A stretch of DNA of 64,000 bases. Source: Hemiscyllium ocellatum. Lineage: Eukaryota. Positions 1-56,526 of this stretch are shown here, piece by piece. A program made the position numbers and the translations under genes. Within the stretch, counting starts at the first letter, position 1, and every line of letters begins with the position of its first letter. Where the stretch lies: NCBI RefSeq assembly GCF_020745735.1, contig NW_026867526.1:660416-724415 (forward strand), given 5' to 3'. The notes beneath the pieces are model-generated. The model had not been told where the DNA came from. It did not search any database and saw nothing but the letters and a program-made list of their open reading frames with translations.

Positions 1-986
1 ATCAATTCACTGTCACTGGATTCCACCCTCGAACTCTCTTCCTCTTTCCCCTGTGAATGTTGCTGCACCAGACGGTCTACTGAGTTTGAAAAAGTTTAAA
101 ATGTTTTGAAGTGTACTATGACCGTTGCCAGTGACATTTAAAGCTGATAATAGGTTTTCAAATAATAAGATGCAAAAAAAATTCTGATTCTACATTGTGC
201 CACGAAACATGTCCTGCATAACTGAGGCACAAAGAAAATATGCAGCATATTTCCCTCTGCCTCGCTCAAATATCTCTTGTTGCCAACAACCAATTTCAAA
301 ACTCTTGCTATCTGCCTTTTGTTCCTGAAACGTTCATTCTGATTGGAACAACTTAGTCAGGGCTCTCAATTCTGAGGCACCTTTTGCATTTCTGGCAGAT
401 AAAAGTGGTTTTGAAGCGCGAGATGAAATTGAACTGTCTGAGATTCAGGTATCCCAACTGGACAATTTACAAATGGTCAGGACCGTTGACAAGTTAGTCA
501 GAGATCGCACTGAAACAAACTGTACAACAGACTTAATCCTAGAGGATACATTGCTCAACTCCTCACGTCAAATATATTCACTGTAAGTGAATATTCATCA
601 GAAGAACTAACCAGTGGATTAATGTGAACGAGAATGTGTTCACAATGAACATAAATAACCACTGAATTAATAAACTTAATAAGTCATTGCATTTAACAAA
701 ATTATTGAGGTGGGAAATATCGCCAATTAAAGCACAGATCTGGAGGAAATGGGTTATTCTCTAAATTATTTTTACATATTCTTAAAATGTTCCTTGAACT
801 GTGGAGATTTTGCATGCACTGCATAAACAATATTGCATTCCAGTGTGGAAAGCATTTCTGTTGAAGGAATTAAGGCAAGGTTATTTTCTTGTTAACTGCT
901 TTTAATGAACTAAAATGTTTAAAAAGGTATGAATTGAAAACATGCTTCTGTCTGGAGTTGCCCACTTTAACGGATGTCTAAGTAAA

Positions 987-1280
987 TGTGGCACTGCTGT
1001 CTCACAGATCCAGGTACCCAGGCTCGGTTCCAGCCTCGGGTGACTGCCTATGTGGAGTTTACACAATCTCCCCTGTGTCTGTGTGGATTTCCTCCCACAA
1101 TCCAAAGATGCGCATGTCAGGTGAACTGGTCATGCTATATTGTCTATAGTGTTAGGTGCATTAGTCAGGGGTAAATATAGGGTAGGGGAATGGGTCTGGG
1201 TGGGTTATTCTTCAGAGGGTCGGTGCGGACTTGTTGGGCCAAATGGCCCGATACATACTGCAGGAAATCTAATCTAAATG
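987..1280 (+). mobile_element. Older V-SINE (HE1-like), shared by both arms (mirror ~53565-53825)
   Basis: tRNA-like head, V-domain-like core (tgtggagtttacac..tctcccctgtgtctgtgtgg), aatct tail. Confidence 0.82.
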
Positions 1281-54300: not shown

Positions 54301-56526
54301 TCTGACTAACTTGTCAACGGTCCTGACCATTTGTAAATTGCCCAGTTCGGATACCTGAATCTCAGATACCTTTCATCTCGTGCTTCAAAACCACTTTTAT
54401 CTGCCAGAAATACAATATTAGATTAGGTGCCTCAGAATTGAGAACCCTGACTAAGTTGTTCCAATCAGAATGAACATTTCAGGGACAAAAGGCAGATAGC
54501 AAGAGTTTTGAAATTGGTTGTTGGCAACAAGAGATATTTGATTGAGCGAGGCAGAGGGAAATATGCTGCATATTTTCTTTGTGCCTCAGTTACGGGGAAC
54601 ATGTTTCGTGGCACAATGTAGAATCAGAATTTGTTTTTGCATCTTATTATTTGAAAACCTATTATCAATGTTTAATGTCACTGGCAACGGTCATATTACA
54701 CTTCAAAACATTTTAAACTTTTTCAAACTAAGTAGACCGTCTGGTGCAGCAACATTCACAGGGGAAAGTGGAAGGGAGTTCGAGGTTGGAATCCAGTGAC
54801 AGTGAATTGATGGCAATGCAATTCCTAGTTTTATTCCTCTGTAGTTCCCATAGAGTTTGAACAATTTGGAGCTGCTGTCAAAGTATTCTTGGATAAATGT
54901 TGAAATGTTACTTTCATTGTACAAACATTCTGGAACAATCCCTGGTTGTTGGAAGGTGTTAATAACTAACATGGTTTATGTACTGTCAAAACAGATGGGC
55001 TGTATTCTCCGTGATAGCGTCAAGTTCATTGTGTTCAGGTCTGTTGTGAGGTTGTAGTAGGGTCCCTGATTCTGTGCCAGGTGGCCTGTGTTCACTTACA
55101 ACCTGTTAGAGAGGTATGCAACACCATCTCTTATCAGGTTACTTCAATGCAAGAAAGCAGATTGAGATGTTTGGGTGTTTGTTGGAATTCCACTCACAGA
55201 GGCCAGTGAAATCTATTCAATCGCTGTCCTGACTTGTGTCTCTTAGATATTAAACAGAATTTTGGTGGTTAGCAGCTTTTTCCAGATCAATATTTGTTCA
55301 CAAGCTTTTGGGCATCGCTAGATGGGGTTATTGGAGTAAGTGCTCAAAGAAATCCCAGCTTTTGACTTGCTGTTCTAACAATATCATTTATAACTAATCC
55401 CGAATGAATCATTTTCAAAGTATATTTGATGAGATTTTGCTGAGGCTGTTTTACTTTATATTAAACCAGTGCTGTAGCTGAATTTGATAGTTCAGTACGG
55501 TGAGGGTTCTGCTGAATCCAACACTTGCAGCAGATGGTGATAGCTTTTCAGTTGGTCTTCCATTGCTATCTCAGACCATCCAGTACCTCTGCTAAGAATT
55601 CTGTTTCCAACAGGAGTCAAGCCAACCTAATCACTGTTTGTCTCAACAGGTGTGAGCTCTTGTACCAAAAACATGAAAACAATTTGGTGAAGAGGGGGTC
55701 TTTGGATGCGAAAGGTTAACCTTGCCTTCTCTCCACAGGAGCTGCTAGACCTGCTGAGTTTCTTCAGCAGTTTCTGCCTTTATTTTGGTTTTCTAGCATT
55801 TAAAGTTTGTTGTTTCATTGAAAAAAGTTCTGTTCGATTAAACACGTTCTTCAGAGAAAAGACACATTTGAACAAATTGCGAATGTTCAGAGATATTATT
55901 GAATTTGAGTGCCCCGATCTCGAGCTGTAGTTTCACAAGAAACTATTATGAAGTAACAACACACTGCAGAGTGCAGTGGCTGCTGTAATTGGGTGGAAGT
56001 TATTTTGATCACTCAAATAGAGAATGTCAATGATCCCGTTCCAAATAATCAACAGAAGTTTTTTTTAAAGCATGTGTAAAACAATTAACTTGTTGAAATA
56101 TTTTAATAAAAAGTATTCACGGCCAGTGCCAGCTTAATGAATGACACAACGACAGGAAGGTAGGAACAAGAGGAGGGCACTCAGCCCCTCGAGCTGTACC
56201 ACCACTTACTTAGATCATGGTGCATCTGTGAGCTAATCCACAGGTCTCCCTTTGGCTAAAACTCTTTAACACCTTTGTTTAACAAGCAAAAACTATTCCA
56301 GATTTACTGATTCGACTGCCCATAACAAAGGGAGACACCATTTCTGAAAGACATTCCTGTGAGGACTGTGACACAATGAGGCTGGAATTAATTGCTCATG
56401 AAAGTAAACTTTAAATCTCTGACAATTTCCAATTGAAACATCCTAATCATCATATTTCATTAATTTAACACTATACTTCCCTGGAATCAAGAAATATAAT
56501 GTGTGATTGCCTTGCTAAAAATGAGG

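Follow-up and report, generated by a model that had tools for sequence, protein, structure and literature searches.

Two divergent IgM heavy-chain clusters of Hemiscyllium ocellatum and their V(D)J joining states

Two immunoglobulin M (IgM) heavy-chain clusters lie head to head, as the arms of a large inverted repeat, in a stretch of 64,000 nucleotides of the Hemiscyllium ocellatum genome (NCBI RefSeq assembly GCF_020745735.1, contig NW_026867526.1, positions 660,416 to 724,415 of the forward strand; from here on the window; its contig is labeled C126 among the cluster-bearing contigs). A preliminary description of this DNA had proposed a recent cluster birth by inverted duplication, followed by joining of the V (variable), D (diversity) and J (joining) segments in the germline. 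The question raised by the locus is therefore whether the mirror symmetry is private to these two clusters, here called LEFT and RIGHT, or whether it belongs to something wider. The answer that we consider very probable is that the window carries two adjacent members of a multi-cluster shark IgM family, that they mirror each other by family resemblance, and that each of them was joined separately by RAG-type recombination.

Joining states of the two clusters

The window contains two IgM heavy-chain clusters that are transcribed divergently, with their V exons around 45 kb apart. This head-to-head arrangement had already been recognized, and it is borne out by V-set and C1-set exons on opposite strands, with Pfam E values of around 1e-15 for both V exons and of 2e-15 for the first constant exon (Cmu1) of RIGHT. 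Each cluster unit takes up about 30 kb and comprises an upstream region, leader, V, D1, D2, J, an intron of around 10 kb and Cmu1-4, and the Cmu1-4 exons are open in both genes. As in the IgM clusters of cartilaginous fish, a leader and a V-set exon ending in YYCAR are accompanied on the same strand, within around 20 kb, by C1-set Cmu exons, and among named V regions the nearest matches are IgM VH sequences of sharks (Chiloscyllium, 86%; Heterodontus, 79%; Scyliorhinus, 76-79%).

LEFT is encoded on the minus strand. Its upstream region (4789..7804), common to the whole cluster family, precedes a leader exon (4740..4788, ATG at 4786-4788) and a fused V(D)J exon (4272..4611), with the V body at 4311-4611 and the donor GT at 4270-4271. 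The proximal part of the J-Cmu intron occupies positions 1..4271 and continues to the left of the window, where Cmu1 (about -4452..-4808) and the open Cmu2-4 (-8174..-11372) are found. RIGHT is encoded on the plus strand, with an upstream region (42624..49299) homologous to those of other family clusters, a leader exon (49300..49348), an unjoined and open V-set V exon (49477..49781) and a fused D1-D2-J block (50197..50257). The J-Cmu intron of around 10.4 kb (50258..60635) is followed by the open frame holding the C1-set Cmu1 exon (60636..61001), and Cmu2-4 (64035-67236), also open, lie just past the window end.

The unjoined members of the family show the arrangement of recombination signal sequences (RSSs) of IgM clusters, V-23 / 12-D1-22 or 23 / 12-D2-12 / 23-J. 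In the cluster L013, taken as the unjoined reference, V carries a 23-RSS, D1 (atactacagtgggt) has a 12-RSS and a 22-RSS at its sides, D2 (atatagctggagtga) has a 12-RSS on either side, and J carries a 23-RSS, the segments being around 350-400 bp apart. Compared with its unjoined paralogues, RIGHT is V-DDJ, in such a way that it keeps the V with its 23-RSS (49782..49820, plus strand; heptamer cacagcg, 23-nt spacer, nonamer tcaaaaaca), the V-D1 spacer and the D1 5' 12-RSS (50169..50196, plus strand; weak nonamer, 12-nt spacer, heptamer cattgtg), and lacks the D1-D2 and D2-J spacers together with their four RSSs. Unjoined family members carry a V 23-RSS of identical sequence, and the D1 5' 12-RSS of RIGHT differs from that of unjoined clusters in one spacer base. 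Within the fused block, D1 (atactacagtgg) is followed by 3 nt, by D2 (tggagtga) and by J (ttactgggg...), which amounts to a trimming of 2 nt from D1, 7 nt from the 5' side of D2 and around 10 nt from J, with 3 extra nt, the assignment of single bases being ambiguous. Read in the frame of J, the block is open; its splice donor is at 50258, and one legal 12/23 join would complete RIGHT as an open gene.

LEFT, by contrast, is a fully fused VDJ. Its junction, tgtgcaag/tata/ctgggg at 4301-4318, joins V or D to J at TGGGG, and compared with unjoined paralogues it has lost all three spacers, all six RSSs and any recognizable D. The reading frame of J in LEFT is shifted by one base, and the gene as it stands is therefore predicted to be incapable of encoding a heavy chain. 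An in-frame CARYWGQG reading would need a junction shorter by exactly one base; the frame error may have arisen in the join itself, or afterwards, when a VDJ that was open and had an ultra-short CDR3 gained a single base.

Both arms have thus lost exactly, relative to close unjoined paralogues, the DNA between segments and the two RSSs that bounded it, and their junctions show trimmed coding ends and a few non-templated or palindromic bases. Such a combination is characteristic of RAG-type V(D)J recombination. In the mechanism that we propose, each unit would have undergone RAG-type joining on its own, and the assembled DNA, presumably inherited, would carry the products in fixed form. RIGHT would have fused D1, D2 and J and spared V with its 23-RSS and the 12-RSS of D1; LEFT would have gone to complete fusion, with essentially no D-derived sequence left and an outcome one base out of frame.

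That the arms differ in their V(D)J state had been noted before and holds in the detail given here. The further idea that the pair represents a natural time series is not supported, since the LEFT and RIGHT joins have no junction sequence in common and are therefore independent events rather than successive stages; the varied stages are spread over the whole family instead. Each of the two junctions is also unique in the genome. A simple V-to-DDJ join that would make LEFT the step after a RIGHT-like state was considered and rejected, as none of the D1-D2 junction of RIGHT is found in LEFT, and a derivation of LEFT from a RIGHT-like state through a later internal deletion between TAC repeats is possible.

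Mirror symmetry and family kinship

Self-comparison of the window gave three inverted matches, 1-4240 against 54811-50562 (95.6%), 4311-6320 against 49777-47770 (93.8%) and 6321-7804 against 47441-45958 (96.9%). When the left flank was lengthened by 20 kb and the right one by 10 kb, the arms extended from -18158 to 7804 in LEFT and from 74000 to 45958 in RIGHT, at least 26 kb each, a length bounded by the sequence compared; the outer ends of the homology are beyond the added flanks. The inverted repeat is real, far above chance and larger than previously stated: the mirrored segment, described at first as at least 7.8 kb of promoter, V, J and J-C intron, is in each arm a whole IgM cluster, and the second Cmu expected from extending the comparison leftwards is found there as the Cmu1-4 of LEFT.

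The inner edges of the arms are not alike. The homology of the LEFT upstream region to RIGHT and to 19 other clusters ends exactly at 7804, whereas the upstream region of RIGHT goes on matching other clusters past 45958, to at least 42624 (at least 3.3 kb more). Position 45958 is consequently not a breakpoint of RIGHT, so that only one of the two inner breakpoints proposed before, that at 7804, stands as the edge of a unit. No homology edges private to the pair were found at matching breakpoints, and the outer flank is family-wide. Logan unitigs of around 80-180 nt from four runs, compared with 3500-9400, showed a loose end at 7805, which corresponds to the flank of the other copy of a 271-bp repeat located at this point and is uninformative on the assembly.

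The reason for the likeness of the arms was found in the rest of the 3.98-Gb genome. A 3-kb probe from the LEFT intron detected at least 40 copies at 94-97% identity on many contigs, with RIGHT ranking only around 21st, and a 3-kb probe from the outermost flank of RIGHT also detected at least 40. Overall, the family has at least 40 copies of 92-97% identity on more than 15 contigs, and the whole unit is dispersed in many copies, as is characteristic of IgM clusters. Since the same unit is present in at least 40 copies, the resemblance belongs to the family and not to the pair.

Kinship was analyzed on 10 kb of each of 21 clusters, which were LEFT, RIGHT and 19 of 20 others selected from the family (L012-L031 without L027); L027, on contig C48 at around 486 kb, reads as N over 6.7 kb, either masked or a gap, and was excluded from all analyses. 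LEFT and RIGHT have no special kinship with each other. Their intron identity of 96.4% is 18th of 20 for LEFT, whose best intron matches (97.4%) are clusters on contigs C125, C131 and C133, and RIGHT is about equally distant from all the clusters compared. In the trees both appear as long private branches (0.014 and 0.019) off a star-like polytomy, in clear difference from recent family duplicates such as L020-L023 or L012-L014, which differ by 0-0.3% (branches of 0-0.003). Maximum-likelihood (ML) trees never pair LEFT with RIGHT. With the upstream 3 kb, LEFT groups with L016/L019, from other contigs, with support of 95/90, and a LEFT+RIGHT clade is rejected (approximately unbiased (AU) test, p = 0.009).

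The arms are therefore not mutual closest relatives, and their divergence is not low compared with that of other family pairs; the divergence outside V, proposed earlier as a check, gives in the intron a value that is the depth of the whole family and not a recent one. With at least 40 copies, the rank of 18 in 20, the long branches, the AU result and the unlike edges, the data do not sustain a recent cluster birth by inverted duplication, and the mirror symmetry is best read as the family resemblance of two oppositely oriented units rather than as a private duplication. The SINEs (short interspersed nuclear elements) agree with the earlier account that the arms share two old elements and differ by two young ones, with a correction: the old ones, at 989-1278 and 1509-1839 in the LEFT intron, are present in every family copy, and the young ones, at 47442-47769 and 50281-50561, are private to RIGHT among the 21 clusters.

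Several points weigh against the reading as two family members that were joined separately and passed on. Neither the intron (AU p = 0.25) nor the concatenated data (p = 0.26) reject a LEFT+RIGHT clade; gene conversion among clusters could blur kinship, and upstream and intron trees differ on the partners of LEFT; and the sample covers 10 kb from each of 20 other clusters, out of a total of at least 40. With respect to the joins, the reads over the LEFT junction are unitigs of around 100 nt, none of them shown to bridge it, a 61-base junction query, of which only 3 words were sampled, listed zero runs, and the inheritance of the joins rests on inference.

The first of these points leaves room for an older event. 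LEFT and RIGHT could derive from a local inverted duplication as old as the family radiation, later masked by divergence, transposable elements and gene conversion, with joins that were subsequent and independent. They are the closest pair on their contig, with V exons 45 kb apart compared with 200-300 kb for other neighbors, and LEFT is the third-best intron match and the second-best 3'-flank match of RIGHT, which, together with the two clade tests that were not significant, would fit such an origin. The upstream 3 kb, however, rejects the clade and places LEFT with L016/L019, the pairing is missing from the ML trees, no indel or SINE common to the two arms alone was observed, and the homology edges are unlike between the arms. 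We regard this older duplication as unlikely overall, and a recent one is not supported by the sequences, as the divergence of around 3.5-4.5% is that of the whole family in either case.

The spacer and the surroundings of the V exons

The edge of LEFT at 7804 adjoins an element of around 8.1 kb (7803..15932), delimited by inverted repeats of 271 bp (7803-8073 and 15662-15932) that are 97% identical. At least 25 genomic sites carry these ends, in many cases as pairs around 7.4 kb apart, with an enrichment on contigs bearing Ig genes. No coding domain was identified in the element, which is probably a mobile element, judging from its repeated ends. A simple insertion of a transposable element splitting LEFT was rejected, because family homology is absent within 10 kb beyond the element.

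The inter-cluster spacer that follows (15933..42623) contains SINEs and LINE-like open reading frame (ORF) fragments (around 18528-21143), and no Ig exon was detected in it. The sole Pfam match among the spacer ORFs was a C2H2 zinc-finger fragment on the minus strand (24182-24727), with at least three fingers (E = 1.5e-17). A SINE copy at 30164-30452 is 97% identical to that at 50281-50561, which lies downstream of the J splice donor of RIGHT at a distance of only around 20 bp. The upstream region of RIGHT also contains an inverted repeat of around 600 bp (43874-44457 and 46104-46702, 86%); it is present as well in cluster L018, and it is therefore a feature of the family, separate from the large arms.

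A repeat-rich region such as this one, on an unplaced contig of 1.29 Mb full of units 95-97% similar, could in principle have been misassembled, in such a way that paralogous clusters or haplotypes were joined in inverted orientation within the 38-kb spacer. The 64-kb window nevertheless has no N or gap, and a difference of around 4% between LEFT and RIGHT, together with private SINEs and unique junctions, marks them as distinct loci, easily resolved by accurate long reads. Mixed orientations of neighboring clusters are moreover found on several other contigs, where all relative orientations were seen. An artefact of this kind is, in our estimate, highly improbable.

The proximal 130 bp of the promoter are identical in LEFT, RIGHT and one unjoined cluster, and within 250 bp upstream of the ATG none of these three has a canonical octamer (ATGCAAAT). 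The V exons of LEFT and RIGHT differ by 22 replacement and around 2 silent changes (pN/pS of 3.4), clustered around CDR1 and CDR2, compared with a pN/pS of 0.42 in the C exons. Against these replacement-heavy V exons, the non-coding DNA flanking them differs by around 3-4% between the two arms.

Inheritance of the joins and germline joining across the family

The germline origin of joined genes by RAG activity in germ cells was argued for sharks from phylogeny and from the reconstruction of junctions (Lee et al. 2000, PMC2193156), and we infer the same origin for the LEFT and RIGHT joins, which would have been inherited and not somatic. The previous proposal of germline RAG-type joining in one or both copies is upheld for both as far as the RAG-type signature is concerned, and its germ-cell part is presumed. 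Against it one could suppose that the assembly caught a somatic lymphocyte rearrangement at one of the two loci or at both, each junction being single-copy in the genome. An assembly consensus is, however, the majority of the reads, and a single lymphocyte clone is a tiny share of the DNA of a tissue. Furthermore, 12 of the 21 clusters are joined, several joined states are common to near-identical duplicated clusters on different contigs and must have been inherited through duplication, and germline joining is established in sharks (PMC2193156, PMC5192425). A somatic origin is hardly credible in view of these data.

The joining states across the 21 clusters cover a wide range. Nine are unjoined V-D-D-J (L012, L013, L014, L024, L025, L026, L028, L029 and L030), and the 12 joined ones comprise five VD-D-J (L017, L020, L021, L022 and L023), four VD-DJ (L015, L016, L019 and L031), one VDD-J (L018), the V-DDJ of RIGHT and the VDJ of LEFT. 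At least five distinct V-D1 junctions and three D2-J junctions are present among them. Cluster L021, of the VD-D-J group, lies on contig C126 at around 1.25 Mb. Some joined states recur in near-identical clusters on different contigs, and those joins were therefore duplicated together with the cluster.

Four sets of clusters are 99.7-100% identical over 7 kb (L012/L013/L014, L020-L023, L016/L019 and L025/L026/L029), and they sit on the small contigs C125, C126, C130, C131, C133, C134, C28 and C33. Their likeness reflects either very recent segmental duplication or haplotigs that were left uncollapsed, a choice that bears on the cluster counts. In the VDD-J cluster L018 (contig C133 at around 442 kb), the V-D1-D2 junction at 5230-5290 of the extracted sequence holds cactccagct, the reverse complement of the D2 core agctggagtg, which could have come from inversion of D2 or from the addition of palindromic bases, and the 3' RSS of D2 is still present after the fused junction. 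Cluster L031 agrees with L016/L019 in its V-D1 junction (tgtgcaag|tgggt) and differs from them in its D2-J junction, and in all trees it belongs to a strongly supported clade separate from theirs, a pattern that suggests gene conversion or recurrent identical joining.

LEFT has a trimmed V end plus a T in common with the VD-DJ clusters L016/L019. A broader reading, which we put forward only tentatively and hold as rather doubtful, would take the whole family as a record of repeated stepwise germline RAG joining, with every stage represented and at least five independent V-D1 and several D2-J junctions, and LEFT as maybe the end point of a V-D1-joined lineage. If this were true, single cluster lineages would have been hit by germline RAG more than once, and unselected outcomes such as an out-of-frame VDJ would persist with intact C exons.

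Germline-joined shark Ig genes are a class known since the 1980s. The horned shark gave the first joined IgM clusters of the types VD-J, VD-DJ and VDJ (reference 12 of PMC2193156), and heavy-chain clusters joined in part or in full have been reviewed as a standard feature of cartilaginous fish (PMC5192425). The clusters of H. ocellatum resemble them in being V-D1-D2-J-Cmu miniloci that have lost RSSs and intersegment DNA, with joined and unjoined members mixed. They differ in two respects: the V-DDJ of RIGHT is a germline state outside the list of that review, and LEFT, unlike the known germline-joined IgM clusters, is a VDJ with virtually no CDR3 and a frame error that has open C exons. The NS4 light-chain genes of the nurse shark likewise comprise joined and split genes within one family, up to 99% alike, for which a recent and repeated RAG-type joining in germ cells was proposed, some of the joined genes being pseudogenes (PMC2193156). 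NS4 genes, however, are VJ light-chain genes with one join, whereas each heavy-chain unit here has three possible joins, and for this reason intermediate stages exist.

The same configurations (VD-D-J, VD-DJ, VDD-J, V-DDJ and VDJ) are known from the somatic 1R/2R/3R intermediates of nurse shark IgH, where any pair of segments can start the rearrangement and one gene group shows V-DDJ, documented as a somatic intermediate, prominently (Malecek et al. 2008, PMC2435157). Those intermediates were found in lymphocytes and thymocytes, unlike the states described here, which are the assembled genomic state of whole loci. As for the arrangement in the window, two arms of at least 26 kb and around 96% identity, inverted around a spacer of about 38 kb, look like an inverted segmental duplication of the palindrome type; unlike in such a pair, the arms are not nearest relatives, their edges do not coincide, and at least 40 dispersed copies of the unit exist, in both orientations.

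LEFT and RIGHT thus belong to an already known class, and the established picture of germline joining in cartilaginous fish is unchanged. What the locus adds is that an apparent 26-kb inverted duplication of shark Ig clusters can be just two family members facing opposite ways, and that a fully joined, frame-broken VDJ stands beside a clean germline V-DDJ heavy-chain cluster, a one-step design like that of light chains. Pre-joining, to varied stages, affects more than half of the clusters sampled, and a full catalogue of the clusters could tell how often and in what order germline RAG events occur and what becomes of them.

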